Assembly (NCBI GenBank): GCA_013115145.1
Contig: JAAPAO010000127.1
Coordinates: 3,552-67,551 of the forward strand
Origin: Perkinsus chesapeaki ATCC PRA-425
Taxonomy: Eukaryota > Protista > Perkinsozoa
DNA length: 64,000 nucleotides
Direction: 5' to 3'
In this document: one piece after another, positions 2,031-46,116 of the stretch
How the letters are laid out: each line of letters starts with the position of its first letter
Numbering within the stretch: the stretch's first letter is position 1
Position numbers and translations under genes: made by a program
Notes under the pieces: model-generated
Database searches by the model: none
Told to the model about the DNA's origin: nothing
The model's input: the letters and a program-made list of their open reading frames with translations, nothing else

Positions 2031-2038
2031 TTTACCGG

Positions 2039-6893: not shown

Positions 6894-9800
6894 TCACTTG
6901 ATGGTTAAAGGGCGATATCTCGACCCACTTCTTGAGCCGGGCAGTCTTGCTGGTGGATGTGGATGTGGATGATCCAAACTAACAGCAAAGTCATCGGCAT
7001 CATAACCGACAAGCTCTTTGCTGATAACATCCTCAGGTTTGATAAGCTGTTGTCTGTTGCTATTAAGTCTTTTTGATTGAGCTACCATCCACCATCGGCT
7101 CATTATGTGTTCTGGCACAAGCAATTTCTGTCGGATCTTCTCCTTCAATTCGGCACCGGTCGTTTGGCCCTAAAACAGCAATTCATATCTCTCTCAATCC
7201 CTCTCAACGTGCTTACCACAATAACCTTCACCAGAGTCGGGAATCCGAAATACATTCCACCTTGAGTGCCCCTGTCATAGTGTTGCACGTAAACCGTCAG
7301 AGGTTGCCCATCCTCGACCGGAGCGTGAGGCGTCACAATCTTAGCACGACAATCATCGTCGTCTCGTTCCAGCCGGATGTAACTATCAAATTATCGTCAC
7401 GCGCCACGAAATTATATCTTTATTTTACTCGAATAAAACATTTGTAAGCTTGTTCTGGGCAGTACTGTAACGTTGGAGCTCCTGGAAGATGTTGTCTTCT
7501 CCACCGTATACTTCCATAACCTTTACAGTAAAAATACCGAGGCCAGGAATCGAACCCGGGTGACTTACCTTCGATCTGTCGGTAACAACCATTCGGACAG
7601 GCACTGCCTTTGCATCACACTCGTCCTCGTGGATCACTCCGACCTTACGACAGTCGCTCACAAACGTCGGGTTCTCATCCACGAGGTGCTGCCACAGCTG
7701 ATTTACCGTCAAAGAAGGCTTTAAATCTGAATAATAAATGCGGGGTGCCGGGAACGAACCTATGCCTCACCACCCAGGTCATTTCCTGCTTGCTCGCTGT
7801 AACACTCTGTTGTCGGTACAACAGTCATTAAACCGTTGGCTACCTCTCTCACATGCTCATCGAAGAAACGAACCTGAGAAAATAACCGTAAATGAATGAG
7901 AAGTGTGGTATGACAACTTGAATATGAAATTTAAATGCGTTCTTGACATCACCATTGTGGTGATGATTAATGCGAAACCATTAATCATATAAAAATGGTT
8001 AATTGCACTCTATGTGGTGTGGAGTGTTTCCTTCCCACATACAGGATGCATAAATATTATATCACTATGGATTCGCGAATGATGGATCTCGCCGTCGGGG
8101 AGCTGTCGGCAATTAAGGTAGGACCCGTGAGAATATCTCCTAGAGATGACATTAAACACACTTACACATGCACATCCATTTTCATTCTCAACAAGCCTTT
8201 TCGGGACCCCGACTGCTTGCATCGTCCATTCGTGCGTTGGTGGCTGTCCCCAATGCAAAGATGAGAACTTCTCGTGTGACGCCGTCACATGGGCCGCCGA
8301 ATTGGCATCATCCAGTGCCGCCTGATGAGACCAGTCCACCCAGGTTCGATCCCCAGCGAGAGCACTTACGAAGAACCTTTGGTGGCTTCCAAGCAACGAA
8401 TGACCGGCTTCCGCACCGTTATTTAGGAATTCTTCTCGGGAAGCAGCTGGCGGTGTCCCTCCCGGAGTTAGTAAAATATCTTGCCTGAAGAGTATACAAC
8501 TACACCCTTCCCGCAACCATGGCCCGCTCTTTCGAACAGCTCCAGTTTCACAGGGTTGATTATAGGCGATCGAGTTTTGATCTTTCCGTAACCACAGCTG
8601 TCGGAAATTTCGGGAAAGTGTGTCGATTTTTTCGTATTAGGACCCAAATAAATTAAAACTAGTAATTAAATTGATATAAACTTGATATTGACTGATGAAA
8701 TTGATAACTTCATTAATATTTCTAATGATTTAGTGGAATTCAACATCTCAAGCACGCGATATTGTAAGAGTAGCAGTACTGGTTCGATGAGAATAGCTAT
8801 AATTATTAAAATGTCCTCGCCAGGGATCGAACCCGTGCCCCTACCCTTCATCAACATTGAACGTCTCTCGAATCGCTCTGGTCACTTGCGCCAAATTCCA
8901 TCTGAAATCCATCTCCAGAGTTTCAACCGGATGCGGTCGTCCATGTGACACAATCGGTGTCTCCCTAAAAACCGAAAATTTCCGGCGACATTTCTCGCTT
9001 TTTCTTACTGTATCGAAGCCGTTGACGGATGAGCGTTATTGCTATCATCGGTGCCACGGGAGAACGGCCGGTCCCAACTGTCATGCGAGCATCTGGCGAA
9101 ACAATGGAAATTTCTCGCCGAGCCAGCAGCCTTACATCCCATCAATGCTTGCTTCCTCCGCAGGGTCCACCATGTGAACAGTAACAACAACTTGATTAAT
9201 AAGACTAGCGAAGCAGTCTGCAGCTGTAAGTATCTTTTCAGAGCAGATAATGCACGGTTAACCTAAAGATTCCTCACCTTAAGTTTCGGGACCTCCGCAG
9301 AGCTCAAATCGGGCACGGCTGGGACAGGTGGATTCGGTCCGTCATACCATTGGCAAATCAAAACCGGTGCCACACCATTGCAAACGGTGACCTGACAACA
9401 TACCAAATCGATCAGCTGGGCGAGCGCTTTTTACAATCCAACTCTACCAGGTTAGTGAGCTCCTGAGGATCATCGAGTTTGACAGATGCAAGACCGGTGC
9501 GTCGCTCCGCCTCCTCGTAACACAAAATTGATCCACCGTCCTTTTCCGAGGGCACGCCTTCTGGCCAGAGCGAAAGAAACTGAATGCATATCCAAGGTTG
9601 AAGCAGGTAAGATACAAAATAACTCTACTTTGGCTAGAATTTCCTGATCAATCTCCTTCATATTCTGTAAGCCAGCAGCTTCCACCATCTCGCTGATCCT
9701 CGTTCCCAAGGCTGTCCGTAATGTCGGTGGCCCTCCAGCAGCCGTAACTCCTCCCAGGGAGATGTAATCGGCACCGAGCTCGACAACAGCGTGAGTTTTA

Positions 9801-12800
9801 GGGCAATAATATTTCATAATGACCAAAGTGCCTAATACCAAAAACGCAATACAAAAATCGCTTCGCTCCGCTAACCTACCCTGATTTCTCTCGATAATAT
9901 CTCCGAGTGGCTCAGGTTTGGCTTTTCCCAAATGCAGACGTCTGTGCACCGCCAACGTGTGGCTCGGTACCGCTAGTAACTAAAAATGACCGCTGCGCCA
10001 CGAAATTCATCCACCCGGTTCGTACTGTAATGTCTGCAACCTCCGGAGATCGATCCCTTCCTCGCTCGCTTGTTCGAGTTCCGATGGAAGTTTTCATTCT
10101 GAAAATTCAACCATTATGGGCCGGAAAAAATAGGAAAATTCCCGGAAAATTCCGGTCGTTTTTCCCCTCCCTGATTTATATAATATTTTCACATTGCAAA
10201 ATCGTTTTTCATATCATCAGGGGAGACAATGCCGTCCAATCTCGGACGAAAATCAAAACAATGGCCTCGAATTTAGTTTCTAAAATTATACCCCGCCAAA
10301 ATCTCAAAAAAATTCCCGTTATTTTTCCACGAAAAAGTCGTAAATTCGTTTTTTCCGGTGGTAATCTTACGCATCATTAAGCATCGAATCAAGTGTCCTT
10401 CCAGCACGAGATCGACTTCCGCGATGTAAATGATGATGTCCGTCGCTGCCCTGTCGGGTAGGTCCGTACATATTCCAATCTGCAGCGCCTGTGCTGTCCT
10501 CCTCAGCGCTCTCAGATACAACCATATCGCTCTTCAATTGGGACCAATCCATCTCAGTCATTCTGAAAGACGCAAGTTCGATTCCCGGCAGCGGAATTTT
10601 TAGGACTGTCCGTTACTTCTGACAATTTCGCGATAACTTGTCCAACAAAGATGCCAAGGTTAAACTAGAAAATTTCTCTCCAGAAACACAGCAAACACTT
10701 CCCTCCAAATTTTCCATCGACCAAATCCGCAATTTCAAGCAAATTTCCGAGCAGTTTTTCCCTGAAAATTTCCGAAATTTTGTCATCAAATACCCAAGCT
10801 CACCCATCAAGCCGTCTCCGTCTAAGATACGCCAAACCAATCTGTGTTGGGTCCAATTCGCTCGCCTTCTCATTAGTAGCCTTCAATGCATCAACAACCG
10901 ACTCGAAAATTTGCGGTAACTACCAAAACAAAATCAACCTCACCCGAAAAGATTCCCCCGCCTACCTCAGCAGTTCTGAGCATCCGTATAGTCGTTCCAG
11001 CGTTATCCGCTATTGCAGGAATACCAAAGCCCTGCAGTCAAGAGTGCAAACGTTTTAATGTGGGTAATTAATTCCGATTCTGAGATTTATTTCCCCAAGG
11101 TTACCTCTCCTCCCCTTAAATCCGCCGATGTCACTATCCTAACATTAACGTGCATGGCCGCTTCTTGAAGCTCTCGCTTCCGATCGTCAACTCTCTTAGA
11201 CTCGAGCTCTAAGCGATTCTTAACCTGACAAAATCGATCACGTGGTTATCAATTCAACCTATTTCGTATCTTACCGTTTCATAAGACGGATTCGTTAATA
11301 TCTTATCTGCCTCAGAAGCTTTCACATACACCAATAAATACCTAAAAATGCCCTCCCCCGGGTTCGAACCCACGACCTTCCCCTTACGCGCTATATATTC
11401 TTTGCCTCGTCACTTCCGTCGGAGATCTCAAACCTTTTGTAAGATAATCAGATGGAACCACATCGGTGCCGCCGAAATTATCCTCAACCTGAAACGAAAA
11501 ATGTAAAACGAAAAACGCTTCGCTCCGCGTGAACACTCACCGCCGCATACTCCGAAACCTTCGTAACAGAATCGTCATCAAACCGGAACCAATCAGTTCC
11601 TGAAATCGATCGATTGGGCGCGCGCTTGTAACATCACCGATAAACTCACCTTCTCCTTTTGGTCGAATAAAAGCATAATAGTGTCCCGAATTAACATCCC
11701 CGGAATGGACCTATTATGGTTATCCCCTGGTTATCCGAGGTTGAAGCGCGAATTCCAGGCTCAAAAAGATACGCCCGCGTAGAATCTTCACAGTGCGCAG
11801 CTTCCTCCACCTCCTTACCAGAACCGTGTGAAGAATATAGTCTCCTGTCCCGGGAAGCAAATTATCCAAATTCAAACGCGTTGGGAATTCAAACCGATCA
11901 TGCCTGAGCAAAATCGATCACGTGATCGATTACGAACCCCCTTACAATTTAACCATGTCCATCCTGGCGAAATCAAAATTGAATCTTTTCAGTTGAATAT
12001 TTAGAACCGGTGGGAACTTCGTAAACCGAATACCTTTCCTTGCCCTTTGCTTTCCATGACCTAGTAATCGAAAGGTCACGGGCTCAATTCCCAGTCGGGG
12101 CATTTTTATTACCTTCTGCTTCATAGGCATTCTCCCCCTCCAACATCTCCACTTGCGTAAAATCAAGTAGAGAATCTTGTAGAGTCTTCAGTCCAGCCAC
12201 ATTCAGCGATAAATCATAGAAAGGCTCAAGTCTGATAGGAGTAGAAAAAAAATCGAGTGAACCCGAAACCACAAAAGCTCGAGTGAGAATGAAGATGTCC
12301 AAGATTTTCCTGTCATTGTCGTGCATTCCCCAGCAAATATATTTGAAATTTCCCGAATTTTTCGGAAAAAATGTCCAATTTTCCCGAAAATTTCCGGTAA
12401 TTTTCCCTAGAACATCTCAGATTTCCTTAGTTTACTACCTTCTACTAGAGTAGCTTATATCCACACATTCAATAAAGTTCTCAAGCTCTCCTTCGAAGAG
12501 TTGCTGTATCGCACCGTCGACCGAAGTACCCTTCAACTTCTCCTCCAACTTGTCACAGAGGAGTCTCTCCAACTCTTGAGCCTAGAAACAGCAGAATCTT
12601 TAAATATAAAGAATCCCATAATCATCAGGTATAATAAAAGTCTATTATATCATATCATGAATAGTTACAGTGTATCTGTCAAACTACCAGTAAAACATCC
12701 CAGGTTCCATTCCCACGCAGAACACATCAAAATTATCATGTTCTCCTCCATCAACTGGCCGATCTATTTTAATGTTTATTTGGTTGCCCTAAGACGTGCT

Positions 12801-15800
12801 GTTCTACAACCTTCCTCACCAAGAACCCCACGAAAGACCTCCTTCACGTAGTAATACGTACCATACAGCAAGACTATTATTAATTTCATACCGCTCCTCT
12901 CTTACGTCATGTTGAGTAAATGCATCCATCGAATCCCATCCAAATGCTCTTATCAAATCCTTACAAGTCACCGGGACATCAGAAGTCTGCAAGTCCAAAA
13001 AGACCTGACCACAACAACTCTCAAGAGATGGATGATATAACGACCATCGATAATTTTCAACTGAGACACTGCATTGGATGCCTGGATCCCTCTACCGCCT
13101 GGTGCTCTCTCTGTGCGCTCGATCTTGGACTCTATATCAACACACTGTCCCCGATAGCGTCCAGCCTTGCGAACCAGAATCCAATCCGAAACTCGCTTAA
13201 TCCTCAAGTACAATCGAAACGACAATGAGGGAATTGCGCACCTACCGAACGCATGCTTCAACCTAAGATACTACCTTTTGCAGTGCAATCGGCAAGCTCA
13301 ATCGACCTCCAGATGGACTCATACATGCCAATGAATCTTCCTCTCCAATTTCCCCACCTTCCTCATCCTTAGCCAGACCTGAGACACCCCTCAAAAATCT
13401 TCACAGTGCGAAAGATTCCTACGTTCTCGCTCCGCTCTAGGATCAACCGAATAAACAATCTCCCGGAATCTTCCCAAATGATACAACGACTGTAGCAGTC
13501 CATTCAGGTAGCAAGTTGCCCCATGGTTTCGAAGACCAACGAAACTGACGACAGAAAAATCAAAAAAATTTTTTCCCTGCAAAGCTACCCTGTTCCTCCT
13601 CGCTCCCTATCAGTCCCGTTGCCCAGAACTGTCTCGGCTTGCCTAGCGTAAGCTGATGCTCTCAAAACCTAACAAAACAGCAAGTAAAATAGGATATGTT
13701 TTCCAAACTCGGTCGCCTTTTCACGATTATTTCTACAGATTTACTTTTCCTCCGGTTTAACATGTCTCATTCAATCACAAGTTCAATTATCTTTACTCTC
13801 GACAACCGTGTAGTGTTGGAGGCCTCTCCTGGCTCCCGTCTCGGGAGATCTTTATTATTTACCCCGAAAAACAACTTCCAAAAATTCCCACCAATTTTTA
13901 CCGAATAATATAACTTTCCCAATCTTACTTGGAAACACATATCTCCCCACTTTACGAAATTTCCCAAAAAATCGATAATTTTTCCCATGTTTTCCCCCCT
14001 ATTACCAAATTCCCTTCCTCATCCAACCAGCCTTCTTTAGGATCCAATACTTTATCGATTAACACCAGATCATGCCAACCACGATCAATCTCAGCCTTGC
14101 AGAAATTATGACTGTCAGATTTAACCTGATCATAAATCATTGAAATATTACAAAAACCTATCTCTTCAGTCACCAAGATGACCCATGCCTTGCTGCTCGC
14201 CCAGTGAAATATCTCACTTCAAAAACTAGACATTAGAGCCCCCCAGATTTCCTCCCTATTCTCACGAAGCCCAGCCTCAGGCGGCTTTGCTATGAACAAC
14301 CGCTGAGTGAATTCCAAAGTTGACCAAAGTCCACCAATACCAAACCGCTTCACCCATTTCGAGTCGTGACGGAATATACTACAAATTCACATTAATTTTT
14401 ATATTGCTTCATATGATTTATCGAATACCATATCCAACTGCATCACAAGCCCATCAGAGATTTCTTGCGCGCCACGAAACTCTACTTCCACTTACAACAG
14501 ATTTTCTGTAATCCTTCTGGTTGATAACAATAATCTGAAACTTAACACCAGCATAGACAAACCGAGGATCCATGCCTGACATCGAAAATTCACTGCGCCA
14601 CGAAATTAAAAAACCACTACTACCTTCCTCCCTCTCCTGGCATTCTACATAGGCAGCTAAATAGGTCGGCGCACGTGTGCGATTGCCGTGGGGGAAGACC
14701 AAAAGCTGAGGAGAAGTTGGTATGAGAATTCTCGTTAAAGCCACAGAGATTTGGATCCGAATACATCCGAAGCGGTGAGTCACATTCCCCTATTGAAGAG
14801 ATGTCCGACTTTTTAATGAGATTTCAAGTTGTATTTCTCCGGTATATGGTATTCTCCATTTACCATACGCATTGCAATATACTACATTTAATACGAAATG
14901 AACTATAAAAAACATATAGGATAAAATGTGCGGCACTTTCATCTACGAGCCTTCATAATTCCAAATAAGGTTCCACCTTGGAAGGGGTCCAGTTTCCTTA
15001 TAATTTTCCATTCCCGATGACTTGAACCATAACTTCATCAGAAGATCTAATGGGACAATTATACCATATAAAAGCACCCTCAAATTTCACAAAACGTGTA
15101 TTCATGAATCGCTTCGCTCCGCCTGAATATTGTTACCTTAAAAGTAAATGGTCCAGCTGTGAGGGAGGGTGAACGAATCTGCTCCATTGGTTGATATTTC
15201 GCAATATCCGCTATCTTAAACTCCAGCTCATTAGGGGCACATGGTGGAATTGTAGCTGATTAAACAAAAGAGCGGTATGAGCTGCACCAACACACACACC
15301 CGACCAAGCTAAAGCATATACTAAAGCACCGCTCTGTAGACGTGCCGAGCTTTCCAGCAATAAAAGGACGAATACGATATTCAAAAACCTTCGCTTAAAA
15401 ACGAGTCAATGCTGCTCCTCGGTGAATTAATTGAATATAGCATTTGGGCATATTTCCATTTGGCTCGATTTACGTGGCCCCGAGAATTATGATATATTAA
15501 TTATGACAACGAAGTAGTAGTAGAACAGAATAGGCACCAATTTTATCGACACAGCTACCAAAAATGCCATAATTATTAACTGCGAGAATTTTTAAGAAAT
15601 TTCCAGAAAGAAAGTTTTTATTCAATAAACCTCGGTGGTATTATCAAATAGTAGGACACTACTGTTTATCATTATCACTATATTATACCACTGTTATTTA
15701 TATTATTACTATAGAAGACAATATTGAATATCTCCCTTATATTATTACCAGCATTATGATCCACTTCTCCTCTTTGTTGTAGATCCTTCCGACTGCTACT

Positions 15801-15890
15801 ACCATCACTAGTTCGTGATGAGCCCGGTGATGAATCTCCCTTATGCCCTCGAGTAGATGACGGAGATTTCCCGCCACTCAAAATCGACAT
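6894..15890 (-). CDS. USP7: USP7/Ubp15-like ubiquitin carboxyl-terminal hydrolase (MATH + UCH + C-terminal region), many exons
   Basis: Spliced by eye: MATH (ELEFKIADIAK..SPSLTAGPFTFK|LLVFPHGN..YLAAYVE), Cys box GFVGLRNHGATCYLNGLLQSLY, DAFTQHDV, YEAEG|HGKQRARKGIRFTKFPPVLNIQLKRF, His box HTVL|VHSGDVNSGHYYAFIRP, WFRFDD, EDNFGG, YLLVYV, C-terminus IRQKLLVPE..SLDHP..PLTIK*. Confidence 0.92.
7521..7568 (-). other. 48-nt intron containing a tRNA 3' fragment (sense)
   Basis: GTAAG..ccggg-TTCGATT-cctgg-cctcggt-a-ttttt..AAAG; removal joins TDRSK|VMEVYGG. Confidence 0.85.
7727..7770 (-). other. 44-nt intron containing a tRNA 3' fragment (sense)
   Basis: GTGAG..atagg-TTCGTTC-ccggc-accccgc-a-ttt..CAG; removal restores frame (DLG|DLKPSLTVNQLW). 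Confidence 0.8.
8322..8369 (+). other. 48-nt minus-strand intron containing a tRNA 3' fragment (antisense to the gene)
   Basis: + strand ccagg-TTCGATC-cccag-cgagagc-a-CTTAC; the CTTAC is the minus-strand GTAAG donor. Confidence 0.75.
8797..8844 (-). other. 48-nt intron containing a tRNA 3' fragment (sense)
   Basis: GTAGG..acggg-TTCGATC-cctgg-cgaggac-a-tttt..TAG. Confidence 0.8.
10563..10601 (+). other. tRNA 3' fragment (antisense) at the 3' end of a ~240-nt intron
   Basis: gcaag-TTCGATT-cccgg-cagcgga-a-ttttt, directly beside the minus-strand acceptor at 10563. Confidence 0.75.
11342..11387 (-). other. 46-nt intron consisting of a tRNA 3' half (Thr-like geometry, sense)
   Basis: GTAA-gggga-aggtc-gtggg-TTCGAAC-ccggg-ggagggc-a-ttttt-AG; the following exon encodes YLLVYVK. 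Confidence 0.85.
12061..12112 (+). other. 52-nt minus-strand intron consisting of a tRNA-Thr(AGT)-like 3' half (antisense)
   Basis: CT-AGT-AA-tcgaa-aggtc-acggg-CTCAATT-cccag-tcggggc-a-ttttt; removal joins YEAEG|HGKQRARK. Confidence 0.88.
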
Positions 15891-15982
15891 ACTTCAAAAA
15901 TGATCACAACAACAACTACTGTCATACACTAATTTGCATAACAAAAATCGCTTCGCTCCGCTGTCACGCTAAATACACAAAC

Positions 15983-16009
15983 TAGCCCCTGCCGAGAATC
16001 GAACCCGGC
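15983..16009 (-). other. tRNA 3' fragment (intergenic/UTR)
   Basis: ccggg-TTCGATT-ctcgg-caggggc-t; T-stem pairs fully. Confidence 0.7.
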
Positions 16010-16123
16010 AGGCCAAGAAGATCTGATTTTTCCCAGGAAAATAGCGATACCAAATTTCCTCTAGATTCACCATAAATACAAACTTGTTTAAAAACTATTA
16101 CTGAGGGATTTGTTTGATTTAAT

Positions 16124-16148
16124 TGATCTCTCCAAGAATCGAACCCAT
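16124..16148 (-). other. tRNA 3' fragment (intergenic/UTR, degenerate)
   Basis: atggg-TTCGATT-cttgg-agagatc-a. Confidence 0.55.
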
Positions 16149-16216
16149 GCCCTCTCCCTCAACAAAATGCCAGTCACACACAGCAATGAAACGTAGTCGA
16201 GCACCCAAGTGCCACG

Positions 16217-19200
16217 CTAGCAAGGAACTGTTAAATTAAACCGCCTCTCCCGGGGATCGAACCTCCGCGGGTTTTCGTACACCGGGTTCTCGAGCAAGCG
16301 CCAGCTGCAACGCATCTCTATATATCCCCTTTGCGATCGATCGATACTCTCCATCATCTTGACTCAGAAAATTGTCCATCATTACCCCACAATTCACCTA
16401 TACAAAAAATGGTAAACATGAATCGCTTCGCTCCGCCTACTACCTCAAGTATCTTTAACTCGCCATTCGTTAGCTCGACAACGTCCACACTACAGAAGTC
16501 GATTCCTATTGCGTTTGTCGCGGCTACCGCAAGCGAAGCAATCTGATGAGATACTTCATAACCCGGACAACATTGACCAAATTCGACGTGCCAAAATGGA
16601 ACAAGAATGTAATATTACACTATAGCCAATAGTACACTTTATTATTCAGCCAAGATGGTGCGTTCATAGAAAATGAGTTGTTGGTGGTGGAAAAAGAATC
16701 TTTTAATGAATAATAAAGCAGTAAGATTGGGGTTCAAGATAGGAGCTAAAACACAATTTAAAATAGGGCCAAGATGCAGCCAATACTTTCCCGTCCTCGA
16801 CGGGCTCCCCTTGAATCCCATCACCTCGGAGCGTCACCCGTGAATTTCTGTAATTTCTCTAGCGCGCATAAAATGCAGCACCTTGAATGAATCCAGTCAG
16901 AAATGAGAGACCAGCTCCTCTCCTCCTCAGCCCTCCTTCTCCACATTACCCTTTTCCCCATATCAGAATCCATCTCAACTAACTTCGCCTTCGCACCTAG
17001 TCCCAAATTATGCTTCCACTGTAGTGGGATTATCTCATCCTTCTCAGGTACCCAGTCAGCATCTTCAACTGCAGCCAAGCAGCTCGCTATTCCCTGGAGA
17101 CAAATCAATGGCGAGCATTCAAATAAAGCGGCAACCCTAAACCCACTATCGAATAGGTTCCACTGTGGAAATATTCCCTTAATTAATTCGCCCAGCAAAT
17201 CATGCTCTGCAGGGTGGCGAAATGCAACCGAAACCCGACCCTCCAGTCGACGATCTGCCGTTCCTATAAGCTTTAAAGCTGTCAACAAATCTCCACGCTA
17301 CAAGTGCTCTTTAAACTACTCAATTCCATCAGTTACCTCTTGATCAAAAATTTCCACGGAAATTAGGAAATCGTTCACGCTCTTTGATGGTTTATGTCGC
17401 TTTGTGCCCAAAAAGGTTCTTAACATGCAGATACCACATAAACCTCCAAAAGCAAGCAGCAGCAGCAAGATGAAGTGCCACATTGTTCCCTATCTCTCCT
17501 ATAGCCCCCCCCTCCCTTTGTCCATTATTAACCTGTGCATTATGTTTATTAAGCCTCTGTGCACATAGTTCCGTTATTGTCTTGACTCCATCTCCCTTCA
17601 CCGATTGCCTCTGCTTCGAATACATTAATCTCGGTCTGCGATGGGTACATACAACCCTGTATTCATTCAATATATTCAGAAATGGTGAAACTGCCAACCC
17701 ATACCTGACAAAAAATTTCCGAAAATTTGCATAAAATCCAAAGAAAATTCCCGAAAATTTCCATTTCCCGATTCCCCAAATGACTTATTGTGGATGATAA
17801 CCTCAACAATAAGACATCATTATCAGAATTGAAGGGCCTAAGAAACCATATATTGACCATGGACCAGCGAGCCAGCTAGCGAAGATGCGTCCCTAGGTGA
17901 TGGAATAATATTTATAATGCGGAGACGTAGCGAGGATCTTTCTATGAAATAGGAAGAAAGGTCCCAAATGCTTTGCTTTTACCAGCATTTGATTCTCATC
18001 CATGAATCGCTTTTAAAGCATGTCTTCGCCTGAATTGGTGAAGGAAATTTTGAGGAAAAACAGTAAATTTTCCTTTGTTCACATTTGCGTGCTTAATTAC
18101 AGTCTTCTATGGGAATTGAACACAAGCTTAACTGACGAAAACTAACACCTATACCAGAACTGAGATTAGTGAATCAAAATCACCGATACAGAAAAATAGC
18201 CATCATCACGTTCGCAAACCTAACTAACTGAAAAGAGTTTTACCACTGCGATGTACGGAGGTAAAAATGATTGTTCACCTGCTCGCTCGAAAGAATTTTT
18301 TTAAGAAAGTGTTTTTTTTGCAATTTTTTCTGTCTTACTCTCGGCTGAATATAGTCAATATTGCCGCTTCCGCTTCTCTGACATTATGCGCCACCATAAC
18401 ATCAGCTCCACCAGTACCTAACCATCAGCTGGGATAGACGAGGCATTAAGATTAGGGAGGCAATTAGCCAAGTCATACCAACCACGAGAATTTCTAGAGT
18501 TATCCTCGTAAAATTTGAAACTGATATGACAGGGCTTAGGAATAAGATTCTTACTACCAATGATTATTAATCCTTATAAGCTTAAACGTATGGTTAATAT
18601 AGATTATATTAATACTTGACATAAGTACCAAGTTTTTATTAATACCACATTTCCGCCAAATCCTCTCTTCTATATTACCTTTCAATGGCTTTAACACTAA
18701 TGATTCCGACCCTTCCTTTTTCCAATATTTCAATACCTCCTCAACTGCACTTTGACCTTTAGGGATGTAATCTTTGGCGACAGAGCAACATGGATTAAGA
18801 AAGACTGTATGCGGAACATTTGGAACCTAAACAAATTCTCACTGCGCCACAAAATTATTGATACAGCGAATGTGAATTAATGCATGGGTGTGAAATAGCC
18901 CGATTGCCATTGAGATGAAACATGACGAGGACTTAAACGCAGAAGACTGGATGAGTACGCTACGACTGCATCACCCACACTCCAGGACGTCGAAAAAATA
19001 TATCTTTCCTCAAACAATACAAGCTCAATGTTCTAAAACCTACTCCATGTACTACCATTATCAGAACAAGGGTATGATACATATTACGGCAGGCATGGTA
19101 ATGGTCAGGCATTATTAGCTATCAGAAAAATGCGACAGAGCTACCTGTCCTGTACAGCAAATAATGCCTCCCACTGGACACAATCACCTCCGACATATCG

Positions 19201-19548
19201 ACAGAAATTCCAAGTCATTCCTCTTGGTGACCAGCTTCATCGGAGATACGGGCATTTTCCCAGCAAATATTTACCATTTCCTTACCCCGTGGTCCTCAAG
19301 CACGATGCTGGTTGCACTCTTCTCTTTGCAAATCTCAACTGCCGCCGCCGAGTTCACGTCAAACGTGTAGCCAAAAACAGAAGTCTGCCGAACCGGCGAG
19401 CTTTCTGAAAAAAATCTGAAAAATTTCCGCAAAATATTTTACTCGTTTTAAACTGTAGGATCCAGTCCATCGACATCCTGGTCATAATAAGATTCTCGTC
19501 ATTGGCAATCTCACCGAGTAGTGATATAAACCTTGCTCGTCTGGGCAT
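16217..19548 (-). CDS. RimK-type ATP-grasp ligase-like protein, multi-exon
   Basis: Spliced by eye: MPRRARFISLLGEIANDENLIMTRMSMDWILQFKT|KSSPVRQTSVFGYTFDVNSAAAVEICKEKSATSIVLEDHG|VPNVPHTVFLNP..LVLKPLK|GTGGADVMV..LQWKHNLGLGA..IASLAVAATNAIGIDFCSVDVVELTNGELKILE|VNCGVMMDNF..IYRDAL; KPxxGxGG, VD and LEVN are ATP-grasp motifs; some central exons unresolved. Confidence 0.8.
16228..16282 (-). other. Probable 55-nt intron containing a tRNA 3' fragment (sense)
   Basis: GTGTAC..ggagg-TTCGATC-cccgg-gagaggc-g-gtttaattt-AACAG. Confidence 0.65.
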
Positions 19549-19900
19549 TAAAAAGTGATGCTTCAAAGAGCTTGATATCATCGGTGGTATTTTACTAGGG
19601 ATAACCATTACAACAGAAACAAGTGCAGGAGACTTAACTGTACGATTAGAAGGAAATACGGTATAAAAAATTAACCTAATAATTTTGTTCGGCCAATAAT
19701 ATATTTTAGAAGTTTGAGTTTTCAAAGAGTACCCTGCGAACTTTTCCAGGATGGTCTATTTCGATGAGTAAATTATCGATTGCCGGACAAATGCTGAAAC
19801 GCTGACGAGTGATACATGTTGCCAGGATTCCGATTGACCTGAATAATCCTCAAACAAACCAACAGCTTTTTTTTCTGCTAGTACGCGGAAAACACTCCGA

Positions 19901-19953
19901 CTAAAAGATAAAAAAACAAATACCGTACCCGTGGTTCGAACCCGAGTCTTCAC
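19901..19953 (-). other. Probable 53-nt intron containing a tRNA 3' fragment (sense)
   Basis: GTGAAG..tcggg-TTCGAAC-cacgg-gtacggt-a-tttgttttttt..TTAG; the host exons are not resolved. Confidence 0.6.
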
Positions 19954-21409: not shown

Positions 21410-22401
21410 ACAACTCAGACAGCTCTTAAATGAGAAAGTTTGTAGTATTTGCCCATTGTATTTTCTCATTGATCTGTCTTCAAGTTGTCCTCTTAATCAT
21501 GGTATGTCTATCTTTATGTGAATGCTGTCATGCTGTTCAAATGGGTGTTTCGAGTTACTAGTCAACAGCAACTTTTTGAAGCACCTTCTTTGCGTTCAGC
21601 GCCACACATTAGAAATAATTGAAGGCTATAACATTCCCACGATACGTATTAAAATCGTTTTGTTACTCCAGCTTCCGTTGCCTGTGCTTGCGCTCACGCC
21701 GATGAAAATGGATGCAATGCTACTCTCTATAAGACTGGGGCGGGCGAAGTGGGACCGCTGCAGTTCGTATTTTAATACAGGATAACTTTCAAAAGCCAGT
21801 TCAAGACGCCGACTCAACGCCATGTCTTCCAGATATGGGGTATTGAGGATGCGGACATTGGCGGACGTCGAAACAATTGGGCACGCACAGAGAGCTTGGA
21901 CTCCAAGCTTGGACTCAACTTAGATCTCCAAGCTCTGGAGATATAATTTGAGTCGCAGTCGGAATCTTCATTTATCTGTGCTGCCACTCAATTCTATGCA
22001 AAGGAAAGGTTTACTATGTTTCCTTAACCCTGATGTCTAGACATCCTTAACCCAACAACAACAACAACCTGAAAGTCATAGTTCTTCCCGGTCGAATTCA
22101 TCCAACTGACGGAACGGGCACATGAGAAGAGCCTCCAACTCTGAGGCCTTCTTCGTTGGCAGTTGTACTGCCGCAGTTCCTGTCACTATTCAGCTCAACG
22201 CAGCGCTGTCTGATATATTATAACGTATAATTGATGCCAAGTAAATGTAAGAAAAGTATATAACTGACCGATGAAAGGTAAACTTGAGGTAGAGAGCAAC
22301 CCCTTCATCCTCCAGAAACCTGTCGTGCGCGTACAACAAAGCTTGTCATCTCAAATCTCCTATACGGAGCTTTCACTGGGGAAGGTCTAACGCAGCCATC
22401 T

Positions 22402-22881
22402 TTATTGAACAAGCTTAACCTCAAACTGTGGACCGTTCTCGAGTTGAACATAGAATTTACATCCATCCTTCCAGAAGTCGAACCTGTGAGGGCTCAGACC
22501 AATATGCTCATGTATCTTAGAAGTGCAAGAGCTCACGAGGGTACATCGGGTGATGTCGATAGTTTGGCATAGTGTAGGTTCACAGGTGAAATTACCCTTC
22601 TTCGTCCGAAAGCCAAATGGCATCATATACGAGGATTCCGTCTCCGCCTCCTTCGGTACATTCATATGCATAGTATTTCCGGAAAAGCTGCCTTCATATA
22701 CGCCAGCATGTATCAACCCTGGTGGAGGGCATCCCAGAATACAAGATGCTACAAACCATATAGCAAACCATACCGTAAGCTTTCTGGCGCTCAATATATA
22801 GTATGCTTTTAGGGCCCTCTGGGCCTTACCATAGTTGCCGTTGTACTCGTGGAGTTCAGGGGAAGTGGGAGAGGAAGGCAT
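22402..22881 (-). CDS. Cys-containing secreted/surface protein family, copy 1
   Basis: Start MPSSPTS at 22881 is conserved across paralogs; hydrophobic segment LTVWFAIWFVASCILG; intronless. Confidence 0.75.
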   Translation of the reverse strand: MPSSPTSPELHEYNGNYGKAQRALKAYYILSARKLTVWFAIWFVASCILGCPPPGLIHAGVYEGSFSGNTMHMNVPKEAETESSYMMPFGFRTKKGNFTCEPTLCQTIDITRCTLVSSCTSKIHEHIGLSPHRFDFWKDGCKFYVQLENGPQFEVKLVQ

Positions 22882-23675: not shown

Positions 23676-24078
23676 CCGTTTTGAACTGTAAGATGTAAGA
23701 CTAACAGCCTGAACCTTACTGGTACAGGACCGCCTTAATAAGACGGCCTTATGACAAAGCCCTTGCTGACGAGACTGCTTCAGAGAAGTGCTAGTGATTT
23801 GCTAGTTGAGACAACACTACACTGGATGAAATAGGGAGGGAATTCCTAGAAATAAGCCAATAATCACTCGATAGAAATGCTTCGACTTCATAGTCTTCGC
23901 TTAGCTCCTATCTTCTTACTACATATAATATTATACAAATATCTACTAGGTCTTCGTGACGAAGCGGCGGAGCTCGTTCAGCTGCTATTTTGCTCGTTGT
24001 TAGTTCGTCATCACACGCGTAGGGCTTTGGAGGTGCGAGCGAGTGATCAAATCGCGCGGAAACGATTTAGAGAAGAAG

Positions 24079-31504: not shown

Positions 31505-31984
31505 CTATTCAACACGTTTGACCTCAAACCTTGGGCCGTCTTGAAACTCTACAAAGTACTTCTTGCCATCCTGGAAGAAGTCGAAGTAGCCGGGGCTCAG
31601 ACCAGTATACTTGTGTAGCTTAGTGGTGCAAGTCTTCACCAAAGTACAACGAGTTCGCACGGTGATCTGGCACTCCGCCGGTTGACAGAAAAACATGCCC
31701 TTCTTCGTCTGGAAGATCAAGTCCATCATATACGCAGTTTCTGCCTCTGCTTCCTGTGGCACATTCATATGGATCGTATTCCCGGAAAAGTCGCCTGTGT
31801 AAACGCCAGCAGGTATGTACCATGGTGAAGGGCATCCCAGAATACAAGATGCTACAAACCATATAGCAAACCATACCGTAAGCTTTCTGGCGCTCAATGT
31901 AGAGTATGTTCTTAGGGCCCTCTGGGCCTTACCATAGTTGCCGTTGCACTCGTGGAGTTCAGGGGAAGTGGGAGAGGAAGGCAT
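31505..31984 (-). CDS. Cys-containing secreted/surface protein family, copy 4
   Basis: MPSSPTS start; same Cys pattern; 3' flank 30984-31500 is homologous to 25176-26000. Confidence 0.75.
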   Translation of the reverse strand: MPSSPTSPELHECNGNYGKAQRALRTYSTLSARKLTVWFAIWFVASCILGCPSPWYIPAGVYTGDFSGNTIHMNVPQEAEAETAYMMDLIFQTKKGMFFCQPAECQITVRTRCTLVKTCTTKLHKYTGLSPGYFDFFQDGKKYFVEFQDGPRFEVKRVE

Positions 31985-32225
31985 GAATGAAGGGTATACA
32001 AACCTAGTGAGATTGCTCTGAACAAGTCTCATCGATTGAGTCTATCTACACCGGTAACGCCCAATAGCGAATGGTCAATTACTTGCTTTTGCAGCAACTG
32101 TACGTATACATGTCACGGTCATTTTGCACGGGCTGTGAAGAAGCACCAATCGAAGGGGCCTTGTTTGGTAGAACTCCTGACACTCCAGCTGTTACTCGAG
32201 TACAGCTCATTCGAGGACGTTTGTT

Positions 32226-40135: not shown

Positions 40136-42560
40136 TCATATTTCCTAGTAAATTCAAAGAACAACAATGTACAGGCTCTCTCAAGTAGATATCCAAATTC
40201 TTTCGAGTGCGCATCGCCGCCGCCCTCCACCTACCCCAGCGGTATCCAGTAAGAACTGCGATACCATAGGCCAGTCCGAACAACCAACAGAAGCCCACTG
40301 CGACACATGCCTGGTTGAAACTGTGCCACGGTAACGTCTGAGTTTTCAAAGATGCTTTGTATGTCTCAGGTGCTTCGCCTAGAAAATAAAAATGCCCCCA
40401 CCGAGGATCGAACCTGCGTCCTCCTTACCATCAATGAACTCAGGGCTCTGCAGCGACCTGGCAACCTTCTTTGCCTCTTCCTTCTGCTGCTTTTCTGCAT
40501 CCTTCATCCACTCTGAACGAAATTAGCAGTTTTCTATATATATCAAAATCCTTCCAAAAATGAGCGTTAAAACATGCGCTCAACTTCATATTTTTTCTTA
40601 CCCGAAGGTGTGCCGGATTGCATCCGAGATATCTTCCTTTCAGGCTCCCCCCTATCATCCGTAATCAATCCCTCCTCCTTGCTCTTCTCGAAAGATACGC
40701 TCTTGCTCACTGAAAAATCTTCGCAGTGCGCAACCGTAAAGATTCTCATCCCTTACATTCTGATTTCTTCTTATCATCCTGCTCGGCTTCCTCTACACTC
40801 GACTTCGCGTCCCACAAAAATGTCTGCAACGACTTAACTTGTTCCTCGAATCCTTGAAGTACCACCGCAACCGCCTAAAATAGCACCACCGAGATCAACT
40901 TCATAAGTTTCCAACTTGATTTCTAAACAAATTCCCTTTTCAACTTTTTATCATACTACATGTCACCACTTACACACATCTCAACATTCAACCACAATTC
41001 ACACACCAAAAAGGGAGCTGAGAAAAGTTAAGTATGATTTGCCTAGAGTAGTATACATCTCAATCGATTGTGAGGCAGATCTGGTCCCAAACCCCAAACG
41101 AACTTGAAACCTCTGTTATATTTTCAGCGAGTGTCCACAGAATATAAACTTTTTTATCATCCAATTTGGTCAAACTTCCTTCAATACTTTCTCTCTACCA
41201 AAAAATAGATCGATAATTTACAAAAATTTCGCAAAAAAATATTTCCTAAGATTTCACGCAGAAGTTCGGAGATGATGCGAAACGGCGCATTCTTACATCG
41301 GGACCATCTTCAACTCTAATCTGGTCAGCTGATAAATCCTTAGGGACACTATAGCTAATCTCACTAGTGTGGACATTAAGGAAATATGGACGCTTCTTGT
41401 TAGTGGCATCATCTGTGAACTCTAATCTTACCCAGTGACCTGACCGGAAGAAATAATACCACATTTCCGCAAACTTTGCAGGCGACTCCATTATCAAAAG
41501 ATGCGATGATGCGGATTTATGGTACACATGATCTCAATATTACTTGAATCAATATCATAATTATACAGTAATGGAATTAATAATACCACATTTCCGCCAA
41601 TTCAATATGTCGCTTCACTTGAAAATAATGCTATATATTATTAATATGTCATTACATATGGGGCATGATTGTAGCGGACGAGAGTACATCTTATAGCAAT
41701 AAGATAACTAACGTTTCATAAAGATAATCAAATAAGAATCCTATTTTATTAAATAATACCGCATTTCCGCCAATTCGTAATTACCTGGAGACTCGTCCCC
41801 ACCATCATTATCATGTCTATTCGGAGCACGAACGACATCGCTGGCCTAAGCAGGAAAATAATAAAGACAAAAGACGACTGCGTTACGACTACCCCATTCA
41901 CAAGCCTCTTGCGTTCGCCGACAAGCCTAGCGAGCTCCTTTCGATCGGCATTGAAAGCCTTGCGCAACCTAAGATACACGAACTCTGCGCCTCGACCTGT
42001 TGCCTATCTTGCACGGTCAACCTCAAGATTCTCTTACTGCTTGAGACGTTTCTCCTGCTCAGGAGTGAACGAGGACTTCGTCGACATTTCCCATTCGCCC
42101 AACAGCCTCTGCAATGAATCCTCAGTGTTCCTGAAAACGAAAATCTTCACAGCGCGCATCCTCGATATAAAAATATCCACAGCGCGCATCTTGAATTTAG
42201 AAATCCTCGCATTGTGCGTCTTCTTATACAGAAATCTTCACAGTGCGTAAAGATACTTCCCCTTCATTACCTGCAAGCCTTCTCCAATCTCTCACACGCA
42301 TCAACAGCATCAGAAGCATGTTCCGCAGCGCTTTTCTAACACCAGAACTCTCCACGTCAAAAGCGCGCGCCCATCTAATCGATTTCACCTGCGTGCTGAA
42401 ATGCGACGTGTCAATGCCGCTTCGTTTGAGTTCTTCTTTGGTCTTCCTAAACGTATGGGCCTGTCTGATGACCGGAGCCGCTGGCACTGCTTTAGCGACT
42501 GGGGTTTCTTCCTTGATATCCTTGCCTAAATCTTCGCCGTCAGCCTCTGAAAAAAATGGG
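40136..42560 (-). CDS. Hypothetical coiled-coil protein with C-terminal TM, multi-exon (may continue the 42863-46116 gene)
   Basis: TQ|KSAAEHASDAVDACERLEKACR|NTEDSLQRLLGEW..YLRLRKAFNADRKELARLVGERKRL..CVAVGFCWLFGLAYGIAVL; both ends uncertain. Confidence 0.55.
40379..40428 (-). other. 50-nt intron containing a tRNA 3' fragment (sense)
   Basis: GTAAG-gaggac-gcagg-TTCGATC-ctcgg-tgggggc-a-ttttt..CTAG. Confidence 0.8.
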
Positions 42561-42862: not shown

Positions 42863-45800
42863 TCACTGGAAATGTACTGGAGAATGCCTCCAATGCGAGA
42901 CTTCGCAGCAATCGCTCAACATATTTTTCCCCAGCCTACCTTGAACCTTCTCATCAAGTCCCAAGATATCAATACTCGTCACTGCAGTGTACCTTGTCGG
43001 CACTCCACCGTCCATTTCAATGCCCATATACGCCAGGAAACCAATCCAGAAGAACATAATCAAACAGATAAATACAAACAGCCACTCAGCGACGTGGGTG
43101 GTTTGTTGGAACATCTGTACAGTGGCACCGATTCCAGCCATGATCTGCGGAAGTGCGCCCAAGAACATCATAAGTATCCATTCGTAAGTGTTAGTATAGA
43201 GATTCATGTGCATGTGCACCAAAGAGAAGGCGTCGAGGATGAGCACGAATGACCTGATAAGAGAACCATCTCGGAGATATGCTGGGTCACATCGGCGAGC
43301 GCTCTGATAGAGACCATGAAGCCTTGCTGGAATAAATCCCTGGATTCCAATGATAATGAATCGAAATGATTAAACGTACTCCAATGCAATATACGAACAT
43401 TTTCATAGATAAGAAAGATGCAAGAAGCTTCCCTTTGGAAAGTCTGTGCGCTCAAGGTTCGATGTTCCAAGATGACTCTTAAAAGATGGGGATACACCCC
43501 TGGTGAAAGATACTCCCAAAACTCACCATGCACCCCAAAGATGGGAATTGACCATGAAGTAGGCCAACCCCATATATGTGATGGCATCAAGCAGTTGATT
43601 AGTGCCAATAACCTACATAGAGAACAACACTTATATCAATGCGGCGCCCGAGGAGAACTACTGTACGAAAATCTATTATATAGTATAGTTTTAGAAAATG
43701 ATACATGATATAGTTAAATTTCATATCATATATAGAGTTTTGTCATGAAAATTATACCAATCGATTCCCCTTGTCTTATAGCCATATCCCTAAAGGTTCC
43801 AGCCAATTTTGATCACTCTAACGCGAAATATTTAATTTTAATCAACTTGCTCAACAAACGCGAGCGCACTGTACTATATGAAATTGCGATGTTTTCTGTA
43901 TCTATCAACTGTAGCTCAAGGTCCTTCAGTGAAGGACATTCTTAGCACAACCGACAAGCCTGAAGGCGCCCTTTCAGACCACATCTTAGTAATAATCATT
44001 ATAGTACTACTTCCATGAAGATAATATAAAGTGGGCGAAACTCGGCAATGTCTTTGCCCCCCCACATGAAATGATTAATAAAAAAGGGAAATTCCCTTCA
44101 GTGAAAATGAAGAGTTTTTCCTATCGGACTTTGTCTAAAGAAATGAAAATGAAGCTTCTCTGATTCTTACCAACTTTCCCCCAACTCTTGGTCTCCTCCC
44201 CCCCCTACCATGCAGACTCTGGTGTAGGCATCGAATCCTTGCCAATGCTGCTGTAGTTGATAGAAAAGATAGAAATGTTCCAAGAATAGATTGTAGTCAC
44301 CAACCAGCTCATCCCGAACATAGGCATTGCTCATATCGATTTCTTTCTGAATAAAAACAGATGGAGCAAGAATTGCCACCATTGAATTTCTTAGTCCATA
44401 AAAATGCCCCGCCCCCCCCGTGCCCCCGTTATTACCTCCTTCAACGCATCTTCCAATCGGCCATCTCCCTGTCTACGGACTTCACGACCGACTTCTTTGA
44501 ATCCGGGCACACGACTAAATACAAAATTGAATTTAATCTACTCGAACCACGAATCCTCTAAAAGAATCCAACTAATCCAACTACAGCACCAAACCCAATA
44601 AAAAACGGCCGAGTGTGATCGAAGCCAATGGTAAGTGTTATTGTTGTTGATGACATGATTATTGATGCTGGTTTATATGATCCCAAACAATAAAGCGACC
44701 AGCGACACATGACAGTCCTCATATTAATACTTCTATAAATAGTAATGGTTACAGAGTACGAACATGTTAAAATTATAACTACCAGAAAATAATAACTCCA
44801 AGGCATTTCCCAATAAGACCATAGGCAATCCTATCAGGACAAGAAAGCGAATGAAATGCATATGGGCTCCTCTAGCAGCAGCATTTTCTTGTTCATCTGC
44901 GGCAGCAGCAGCGCTGCTCCTTTGGTCAGGCAGATAGGCGTGCCAATGAACGGTGAGGGTTGAGCACGAGCAGGAGCAGCTTAAACCACGTAGTGGATGA
45001 ACTCTCTTATTTAGAACGCATCTGTCCTAACGAATCTCTATCGATCTAAGGTGTGATCGAGCAAGCACTACCCCCATTCTAGTGAGCCTATGCCCTTAAC
45101 TACCACCTGACCCTTCCCCAAGCACTACCCCACAATAGGTATCCTGAGCATGTCCACAACTCCTCCTCGTTCGTATTCAACCGCACCAATACCAGTGGTG
45201 GCATTAATATTTTCCCGGCCAGGAACAGGAAGACGTAACCACTGAGTGAGCAATCGGACCTAGGACGACCGCACTATAAAGAATTTAAGATACTTTTTAT
45301 ATTACAGCAAACGTCTGAGCTGTGATCGAGGCGTGGATGGCAAAGAAGATCGAAAGCATAAGGAACAGTACTGCAGTTCCCAAAGACAAAAGATACAACC
45401 ATACGAGCCAACCGGGAGTACCTAGTAAAAACCATTAAATCAGACCGCTGGACTATACATTTCTAATAGTAATAAAAACCAGTACAGATAGAAAGCAGCG
45501 ATACCGCTTTCCTGTCAAACAACATTACCACAGCTAGTATATAAATAAGACTGCGGTATGAGATAACCCTGATGAAGTATGTCGAGTGGATCATATACCA
45601 GTGAATTGCATGTGGTCCTCAACACTCACAAAAACTGATCATCTGTGGGACACTCAGCAAAATAGACAACCAAGTTATAACTTGATATTTGTATTAATTT
45701 TCAACCTTATATACTCTCTACCGTAGTCCAGTAGAGTGAACTAATGCCCTCTCATCATTAACACCGTTATTATTATTACCTTGGGGCACTCGACCTTCAT

Positions 45801-46116
45801 AGAAGAATCCTCCGGTAAATGCCAACATAAGCGTATTGACAATCAAGTAGTTATCCATTTTGGAGATGGTAAGATCGAAAAGGTCTCGAATATCCTCACG
45901 GTATAGTCTAACTTGGTCAAACCGGCATTTCTGTGTATGGTACACCTACAGGCCAGAAGAGAATCTTAGGGTTGAGCGTGCAAGATACATAATAGGTTAC
46001 CAACCTGCCCTTACCCTTTTCTGATTAATCTTCCTATTGAACATAAAGTTCTGCCTATTGTACTCAAAGATGCCCTTAACACCTTCAAACATCGAACCGA
46101 CTTCCAAGCCTCCCAT
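42863..46116 (-). CDS. Hypothetical multi-pass membrane protein, multi-exon
   Basis: FEYNRQNFMF..|..QVRLYREDIRDLFDLTISKMDNYLIVNTLML..LRLPVP..HFYLFYQLQQHWQGFDAYTRVCM|VIGTNQLLDAITY..; several TM segments; resembles an alveolate family I recall but cannot name. Confidence 0.6.

Follow-up and report, generated by a model that had tools for sequence, protein, structure and literature searches.

Recurring short modules in the ultrashort introns of Perkinsus chesapeaki as ancient, selected intronic elements

Intron families that repeat within a genome are usually young, decaying transposon copies, and intronic elements that are conserved tend to be short, degenerate motifs bound by proteins. In tRNA-derived short interspersed elements (SINEs), which decay neutrally, a tRNA-related 5′ head holding the A and B boxes is followed by a body and by a LINE-like or A-rich tail. 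Extra-TFIIIC (ETC) sites are B boxes without a tRNA gene, and are conserved between yeast species. Introner elements are known from Micromonas, Aureococcus, fungi and dinoflagellates, and those of Amoebophrya have non-canonical borders, inverted repeats of 8–20 nt that pair the intron ends, and direct repeats of 3–5 nt at the borders (PMC7789003). Here we describe a 64,000-nucleotide stretch of Perkinsus chesapeaki DNA (the window; GenBank assembly GCA_013115145.1, contig JAAPAO010000127.1, positions 3,552 to 67,551 of the forward strand), in which one of about nine recurring modules of 11–41 nt is found in each of at least 40 GT-AG introns of ultrashort length (about 42–60 nt) that lie between 7.2 and 46 kb. 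Comparison of this shellfish parasite with P. olseni shows that the modules are old and maintained by selection.

The intron-rich genes that host these introns in the window all lie on the minus strand, in eukaryotic DNA of 40–51% G+C. The USP7-like gene at 7.1–14.2 kb (minus strand) has a Cys box at 13394-13606, a His box near 11700 and a very high number of introns; MATH and UCH domains are annotated in the P. olseni orthologue. An initial annotation of the window had listed three host genes; the USP7-like assignment held, whereas the ATP-grasp label depends on a single weak RimK match (E = 0.029) and the gene at 40–42 kb (the 35–46 kb gene) gave no match in a Pfam search. A bacterial (horizontal) origin of the ATP-grasp-like gene, by which its introns could have been dated, could not be shown from that one match. 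Introns were delimited by GT-AG borders, reading-frame continuity and exon conservation, splicing thus being read from sequence, and those outside the USP7-like gene are predictions only, made by dynamic programming on codon bias and on GT-AG pairs. The predictor returned many clean introns of 42–60 nt with recurring motifs inside them, and the splice-site weight matrices learned from its introns were weak, G/GT[AG][AG]G (slash at the exon-intron border) and [CT]AG. Intron sizes in Perkinsus have been published (PMC3101222).

The families are the 3′ tail of a tRNA gene; GCGGAGCGAAGCG, whose T-rich tail reaches the 3′ splice site (module B); AATTTCGTGGCGC; GCACTGTGAAGATT (D); GCGCnCGCCCA..GATCGATTT; a 20-bp CACGTG palindrome, ATCGATCACGTGATCGAT (P); GTATCTT..AAGATAC (F); GGAAATTTTC-type tracts (G); and GCGGAAATGTGGTAT. 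The letters C, E, E2 and H also denote modules below. All of the motifs named in the initial annotation are present, and its figure of at least 25 such introns proved conservative. Within the window, GGTTCRANYCC occurs 10 times, GCGAAGC 14 times, TTTCGTGGCGC four times, GATCGATTT five times, CACTGTGAAGATT three times, GAAAATTTCC four times and GTATCTT 30 times. An unbiased repeat search recovered the same families, namely GCGGAGCGAAGCG (repeat D6; five copies, 41 nt), GTATCTT..AAGATAC (D7/D12), tRNA 3′ tails (D8/D16) and GCACTGTGAAGATT (D10; six copies), and added one not named before, GCGGAAATGTGGTAT (D11; five copies). TTGGCGGAAATGTGGTATTA, a module family absent from the initial annotation, lies at 18636-18662, 41450-41476, 41577-41603, 41750-41776 and 44161-44187; three of these copies crowd into 330 nt of a single gene, and another belongs to the ATP-grasp-like gene. 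Across 133 predicted short introns, 88 9-mers were common to at least three introns, against 22.0 ± 7.4 (maximum 38) in dinucleotide shuffles. Where the exon-intron structure of the USP7-like gene was cross-validated with P. olseni, the introns (1014 nt) gave 27 matches to module cores, spread over 16 of 20 introns, and the exons (1258 nt) gave 0 (binomial p = 3.5e-10). Overall there is roughly one module per 150–200 bp of gene.

The tRNA family always consists of the same piece, i.e., T stem and loop, T stem, exactly 8 nt, and an oligo-T terminator, where the 8 nt after the T arm are the acceptor strand plus the discriminator, usually A. Because the tails keep the oligo-T of the gene terminator, their source is a tRNA gene or primary transcript and not a mature tRNA. 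At least 13 introns contain a B-box core of the GGTTCGAnnCC type, with neither A box nor functional tRNA gene, and ARAGORN called 0 tRNA genes in the window or in either of two P. olseni assemblies of the locus, L001 and L002. B-type introns are alike from an invariant CGGAGCGAAG down to the 3′ splice site and unrelated over their first 4–17 nt. The F element is an inverted repeat, one arm of which, GGTAAGATAC, makes a good 5′ splice site and is used as the donor in intron 11225-11274. Many modules contain palindromes, and the initial annotation had spoken of small structured DNAs, but RNA folding of 20 introns gave z-scores centred on 0, with only the palindrome intron 11904-11945 reaching z = −2.7. 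The modules are sequence motifs, not generally stable structures. Modules B and C may loosely resemble the U6 3′ end, and E2 5S rRNA, while the F arm may resemble the U1 5′ end.

The orthologous P. olseni locus (L001), found through a neighbouring single-exon gene, is collinear with window 6894-14128 and was aligned to it globally. In 20 intron pairs, donor and acceptor stand at exactly corresponding places in the two species, and the matched P. olseni introns mostly hold the same module; none of the introns compared was present in one species only. Four-fold degenerate sites are saturated, with 48/152 (31.6%) identical, against 90% identity at first and second codon positions. Despite this saturation, the longest exact block shared by orthologous introns has a median of 10 nt and reaches 24 nt, whereas among non-orthologous intron pairs the median is 6 and the 95th percentile 9, a value exceeded by 12 of the 20 orthologous pairs. 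The exact blocks are the modules themselves (TTAGCGGAGCGAAGCGATTTTTGT, CGGAGCGAAGCGTTTTT, ATAATTTCGTGGCGCG, TGAATTTCGTGGCGC, AAGGTCGTGGGTTCGA, CGGGTTCGATC, AAGCGCGCGCCCAA, GTGATCGATTTTG and TATTTTGTATCTTACC), including the B-box blocks AAGGTCGTGGGTTCGA, CGGGTTCGATC and AGGTTCG.TCCCGGCACC. Two module-free introns at the same positions in both species, 13545-13588 and 7170-7216, provide an internal neutral control, with longest shared blocks of 5 and 4 nt, respectively. Several intron pairs are conserved nearly whole (86–89% identity over about 45 nt). The tRNA tails, kept between species in both orientations, retain the B-box part while the acceptor part drifts. An 8-mer "recurrent position" test was judged too permissive, and the exact-block and core-based tests were used instead.

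Similar patterns were seen within species. Over 6.6 kb of gene, L002 matches the other P. olseni assembly, L001, at 92.7% identity; indels between the two are 6–26 nt only and fall in long low-complexity introns, and no presence/absence difference of introns or modules was found between them. Substitutions affect 7/197 positions (3.6%) in module cores and 71/656 (10.8%) at other intron positions (Fisher p = 0.0011). A divergent P. chesapeaki haplotype was also recovered in DNA contigs of a second sample. It covers window 11170-11970, is about 10% divergent over a 263-nt contig at a depth similar to that of the reference haplotype, and fits the polyploidy or heterozygosity reported for these parasites. 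Between haplotypes, the tRNA-tail intron 11342-11387 has 0 substitutions, while the two exons beside it show 19 differences spaced in threes. In introns 11489-11540 and 11904-11945, the haplotype differences fall just outside the GCGGAGCGAAGCG core (11516-11528) and the 20-bp palindrome. Because the module blocks persist although silent sites between the species are saturated, and because the modules are conserved between assemblies and haplotypes as well, they are under purifying selection. They are ancient, selected cis-elements, not fresh insertions, and selection on them contradicts both a young-insertion and a neutral-litter reading.

The second of these readings would make the modules decaying fragments of tRNA genes, SINEs or miniature inverted-repeat transposable elements (MITEs), without function in old introns. 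In its favour, P. marinus has Dada transposons and more than 500 tRNA gene copies, these unusually numerous genes being targets of the transposons (PMC3706591), and a decayed whole tRNA is found in a P. olseni intron. The latter, at L001:1640-1710, is a nearly full-length tRNA-like sequence (D arm AGCTCAGCGGGTAGAGC through GGTTCGAACCCCGG) in a plus-strand gene, probably intronic, and received no ARAGORN call. However, exact blocks of 10–24 nt have persisted past saturation of the four-fold sites, the substitution density of the cores is three-fold lower, and a substitution-free intron stands between exons with 19 differences, which together make litter scarcely credible. Ordinary SINE or MITE insertion into old introns, the scenario against which the initial annotation had set its own proposal, is contradicted by the same conservation.

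That proposal was that introns are still being gained or remodelled as small structured DNAs are captured, i.e., an active introner-like system. Part of it stands. Module content differs between the species in 5 or 6 of the compared introns; for example, L001:8488-8582 has an extra GCGGAGCGAAG module (B) beside a conserved F, and L001:10013-10370 spans 358 nt with tRNA, B-like and F modules where the P. chesapeaki counterpart is 73 nt. The interior of intron 11711-11818 is unalignable in the second P. chesapeaki haplotype, and other loci pair modules differently. Modules are occasionally replaced, added or lost within existing introns, slowly, and since single introns can hold several modules and modules have been added to existing introns, insertion into pre-existing introns certainly occurs. 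Remodelling and chimeras are therefore real, but slow, with content mostly kept in P. olseni. Gain itself is largely refuted by the comparison: 20 of 20 matched introns share their position with P. olseni, no presence/absence difference separates P. olseni assemblies 7% apart, and the modules are conserved, unstructured and not young. The flanking microhomology suggested as a check was also absent above chance, as direct repeats resembling target-site duplications (TSDs) across intron borders scored 3.51 against 3.60 ± 0.09 in permuted pairs. An active system of this kind is, in our judgement, very improbable.

How the modules spread is a separate question from what they do now. P. chesapeaki DNA contigs aligned to window 7400-13300 show depths of 3–12 times baseline in exactly the module-bearing bins, where pieces of other contigs match about 40 nt with 4–6 differences (about 86–88% identity). 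Where these pieces break off, the borders are sharp: 9871/9874 and 11528 correspond to the 5′ edge of GCGGAGCG, 11911 and 11931 to the palindrome, and 13251 to F. Apparent joints of a tRNA tail with the palindrome, of E2 with the palindrome, of C with F, and of a tRNA tail with F or B indicate that other loci place modules side by side in other combinations. The toolkit shared across genes that the initial annotation had described is thus borne out, with short modules filling the introns of different genes and recombined elsewhere. An ancient introner burst followed by domestication, in which modules, or units of about 40 nt, founded many introns before Perkinsus diverged, would explain these tens of near copies and their sharp 5′ borders. 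It would also account for modules that reach or supply a splice site, such as the oligo-T before AG and two kinds of donor, the F-arm GTAAGATAC and the GT of GGTTCGA (the latter in 16095-16144 and L001:6676-6722), as well as for the extension of the B unit to the 3′ splice site, the high intron number of the USP7-like gene, and an orientation bias as expected of elements that carry splice signals. Conversely, neither TSD-like border repeats nor pairing between intron ends is seen above control (terminal helix 4.52 against 4.50), inverted repeats being confined to the F and palindrome families; the 5′ 4–17 nt of introns are unrelated within a family; and, as noted above, single introns can hold several modules and modules also enter introns that already exist. 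We regard such a burst as possible but improbable; as an account of origin only, it is compatible with either of the present-day roles discussed next.

The reading that we favour, with an even chance of being right, is that the modules are ancient selected elements that act most likely on pre-mRNA, as intron-definition or splicing signals. They would have entered introns, or helped to found them, before the Perkinsus species split, would derive in part from pieces of RNA polymerase III genes, and would act today in cis. The splice sites of these tiny introns carry little information themselves (G/GTRRG ... YAG). Three features lead us to favour a pre-mRNA role. First, five families are strictly sense (B, C, D, E and H, 23/23), E2 being sense in 2 of 3 cases. 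Second, the non-tRNA modules share an architecture in which the module is followed by A plus a U run and then by the YAG of the 3′ splice site. Third, the splice-site consensus is weak. The tRNA-tail family, with about 9 sense and 4 antisense copies, tolerates both orientations and may instead, or also, act on DNA as a TFIIIC site. Several observations count against a signal in pre-mRNA. All host genes in the window are on one strand, such that "sense" is inseparable from absolute strand, and one antisense E2 copy occurs in a plus-strand P. olseni gene. Conserved tRNA tails occur in both orientations, and the F element is also kept in intergenic DNA, which fits a DNA-level role better. Modules of 11–24 nt far exceed the usual length of splicing-factor binding motifs, and no recognisable branch-site motif was found inside them. 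Finally, the cross-species comparison covers one gene, the USP7-like gene, and P. olseni only.

Several of these same points would be accommodated by the main rival reading, in which the modules are DNA-level sites, with the B box serving TFIIIC ("extra TFIIIC") and CACGTG, ATCGAT, GCGC and GGAAATTTCC palindromes serving other factors. Sites of this kind would organise chromatin or transcription and would be intronic because introns are the main non-coding DNA of a compact genome. The B box and its surroundings are conserved in tRNA tails of either orientation while the acceptor part drifts, palindromes occur in many modules, the intergenic F element is conserved beside another conserved motif, and the modules have no general RNA structure, all as DNA-binding sites might. 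However, the 23/23 sense orientation of five non-tRNA families and the conservation of B-type introns as a unit to the 3′ splice site are not easily explained in this way, and one module per 150–200 bp of gene is very dense for factor sites. We consider DNA-level sites unlikely as the general explanation, though worth keeping in view.

Signals in pre-mRNA, if this is what the modules are, could in turn form a combinatorial layer of intron recognition, in which each tiny intron is marked by one near-invariant module of 11–40 nt, several of them from polymerase III gene ends (tRNA tail, B box, oligo-T), and each module is read by a dedicated protein or base-pairing RNA. The modules, anciently spread as founders of introns and now indispensable, would then amount to introners that have been domesticated around a core of tRNA-gene parts; this is a doubtful conjecture that we offer tentatively. 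It is far less probable that the introns are hosts of small RNAs, i.e., precursors of stable RNAs resembling tRNA fragments or tailed by a Sm-site-like AUUUUUG, released after splicing. Near whole-intron conservation in several pairs (86–89% over about 45 nt) and module tails resembling RAU(4-6)GR are consistent with such products, but fold stability is no better than in shuffles and the number per gene would be implausibly high. No RNA family in the window matched Rfam at curated thresholds, and raising E to 10 gave three chance-level matches only.

The individual introns, all on the minus strand, illustrate this variety, L001 coordinates giving the orthologous P. olseni locus. Sense tRNA 3′ tails fill the introns at 7521..7568 (48 nt; T arm, 8-nt acceptor spacer, oligo-T), 7727..7770 (44 nt; AGGTTCG.TCCCGGCACC common to L001:6881-6932), 8797..8844 (48 nt; CGGGTTCGATC common to L001:7417-7467) and 11342..11387 (46 nt; 16-nt exact block with L001:10604-10663). 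The orthologue of the first, L001:6676-6722, holds a tRNA tail with a different acceptor part and takes its donor from the GT of GGTTCGA. Antisense tails occur at 8322..8369 (48 nt; L001:7251-7301 at the same position), at 12061..12112, a 52-nt intron that is an antisense tRNA 3′ half (L001:11343-11395 is likewise an antisense tail), and at the 3′ end of the long intron 10563..10803, which also has G tracts and of which CCGCTGCCGGGAATCGA is kept in L001:9608-9762. Another long intron, 10099..10370, consists of GGAAATTTTC-type tracts (G), its P. olseni counterpart having the same tract type in unalignable form.

Module C occupies two 46-nt introns, 7383..7428 (ATAATTTCGTGGCGCG; 16-nt exact block with L001:6534-6583) and 9980..10025 (TGAATTTCGTGGCGC; 15-nt exact block with L001:8933-8986). 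B-type introns are found at 9832..9879 (48 nt; TTAGCGGAGCGAAGCGATTTTTGT; 24-nt exact block with L001:8783-8832 and part of the B-family alignment) and 11489..11540 (52 nt; 17-nt exact block with L001:10765-10824). E2 and E stand together at 9392..9447 (56 nt; GCGCTCGCCCA..TGATCGATTT; orthologue L001:8300-8355) and 11600..11649 (50 nt; AAGCGCGCGCCCAA..GATCGATTT; 14-nt exact block with L001:10884-10941). Module D occurs at 13379..13422 (44 nt; GAATCTTTCGCACTGTGAAGATTTTT; orthologue L001:12568-12618) and, as GCACTGTGAAGATT together with GTATCTTTTT, in the 108-nt intron 11711..11818 (orthologue L001:11003-11090). The palindrome intron 11904..11945 (42 nt; AATCGATCACGTGATCGATT, P) shares a 13-nt exact block with L001:11176-11227. 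An antisense F element (TATTTTGTATCTTACC) lies at 9580..9628 (49 nt; 16-nt exact block with L001:8488-8582). The 50-nt intron 11225..11274 is, as had been noticed at the outset, a chimera of two families, with the right arm of the hairpin element F (GTAAGATACGAAATAGGTTGAA) joined to CACGTGATCGATTTTG; L001:10491-10536 has the GTATCTTAGGTCGAAGC half only. Content also differs at 10920..10965 (46 nt; GAATCTTTTCGGGTGAGGTTGA), whose orthologue L001:9879-9946 begins with GTACGAACCCCGGTGGAGTCATTTTT.

Further introns are predicted. Within the USP7-like gene these are a 44-nt intron with CGGAAATTTTCGG (module G) at 8965..9008; a 54-nt intron at 9224..9277 with the whole GAATCTT..AAGATAC element (F); and 13196..13274, which begins with GTAGTATCTTAGGTTGAAGC, an F half that also begins the P. 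olseni introns at L001:10536 and 12058. At higher coordinates follow two introns each with a module C (14438-14495 and 14576-14623) and, at 15079..16440, introns with B modules (15110, 15949, 16424) and sense tRNA tails (15995, 16135, 16253). Those predicted for the ATP-grasp-like gene (17705..19953) hold G tracts at 17705-17801 and 19421-19429, H at 18642-18656, a C-like module at 18844-18856 and a tRNA tail at 19901-19953. The gene at 40379..42256 would have a tRNA tail at 40379-40428, D at 40710-40756, 42142 and 42233, three H modules (41456, 41583, 41756) and F at 41969-42037, and a predicted 69-nt intron with an antisense F element lies at 45946..46014.

Three F copies are intergenic (2037-2072, 2188-2223 and 2301-2336) and alternate with GAACTGT(T/A)AGTTTC; one F copy plus CGACGAACTGTTAGTTTCTCG is kept downstream of the orthologous P. 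olseni gene. Intergenic CGACGAACTGTTAGTTTCTCG (variant GCGAACTGTAAGTTTCCC) is found in window 2120-2270, where it alternates with the three F elements, at L001:3528-3555 and at L002:8472, and could be a 3′-end or termination signal or belong to an array of small RNA genes.

Searches beyond these two species returned little. The Cys-box exon searched against representative proteins returned no Perkinsus protein, the best match being 47% identical across the gene; the distant USP7 homologues that could be placed in DNA include intronless metagenome genes; and word-index protein searches found P. chesapeaki and P. olseni relatives only, no P. marinus. A metagenome scan for a distant perkinsid with the 20-mer GCGGAGCGAAGCGATTTTTG gave matches at L005:9849-9868, L006:7213-7232 and L007:6685-6704, all from one sample, but these lie inside a different repeat (GCTGAACGGAAAAACGCCGCTT...GTCCGGGAGGGAAAATAAAAAT) with no other Perkinsus module and look like an unrelated coincidence. 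Neighbour genes at 5331-6086, 61397-62479 and 558-3984 (all plus strand) encode CCR4-NOT subunit 2 (NOT2/3/5 C-terminal domain, E = 6e-21), a protein of the LicD family, and two membrane proteins whose genes are tandem paralogues with 46% identity. At 22396-32032, a tandem duplication of about 3.6 kb holds four paralogues of a 159–232-aa protein family, for which the relatives found among 5.8 billion proteins are P. chesapeaki's own copies only; two of the copies have an identical 94-nt intron in common. A CAA x24 run at 58213-58285, within a plus-strand open reading frame, would encode a polyglutamine tract.

Compared with intron families and intronic elements in general, Perkinsus stands out in that most introns of a gene hold long, near-invariant modules that have persisted while silent sites became fully saturated. 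Should the modules define introns, they may explain how introns of 45 nt with weak splice sites are told apart from exons in this lineage, and would provide a concrete case of the spliceosomal system reusing parts of tRNA genes. Should they be DNA sites instead, intragenic sites for TFIIIC-type and other factors would be exceptionally dense in Perkinsus. In practice, gene models and analyses of intron evolution in Perkinsus, a genus in which P. marinus is transfectable, should treat the modules as functional and not as maskable repeats. Full-text searches of the searchable literature found no description of these modules.

Of the described systems, introner elements are similar in forming intron families that share sequence across unrelated genes, in that some modules carry or adjoin splice signals, and in their sense-biased orientation and many genomic copies. 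However, similarity in Perkinsus extends over 11–41 nt only, the 5′ part of the intron being unrelated, and whole-length likeness including both ends is absent. Neither TSDs nor lineage-specific or polymorphic insertions appeared in the comparisons made, the copies are ancient and under purifying selection, and about nine families are mixed within one gene and even one intron. The defining features of introners that were tested are lacking, though the family structure resembles theirs. Amoebophrya belongs to a related alveolate lineage with repeated intronic elements, and the minority of Perkinsus modules with inverted repeats (F and the 20-bp palindrome) recall its introners, but Perkinsus borders are GT-AG, and end pairing and border repeats are at chance.

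ETC sites are matched by the isolated GGTTCGAnnCC, without A box or functional tRNA, kept across species while its surroundings drift. Unlike them, the Perkinsus B boxes, putative TFIIIC sites, lie in spliceosomal introns at very high density, in tails that keep an 8-nt spacer and oligo-T, and make up one of about nine families. Similarly, tRNA-derived SINEs and MITEs resemble the modules in that both place tRNA-related sequence and short elements with inverted repeats inside introns, in both orientations, whereas Perkinsus has only the 3′ tail (positions ~44–73 plus its own oligo-T terminator), without TSDs and conserved. Intronic splicing enhancers such as G triplets are likewise sense-strand elements under selection in short introns with weak splice sites, and the Perkinsus modules share with intron-definition elements that they are intronic, strand-specific (the tRNA family apart) and under purifying selection. 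Known enhancers are 3–7 nt and degenerate; in contrast, the Perkinsus modules are 11–24 nt, near-invariant and derived in part from tRNA genes.

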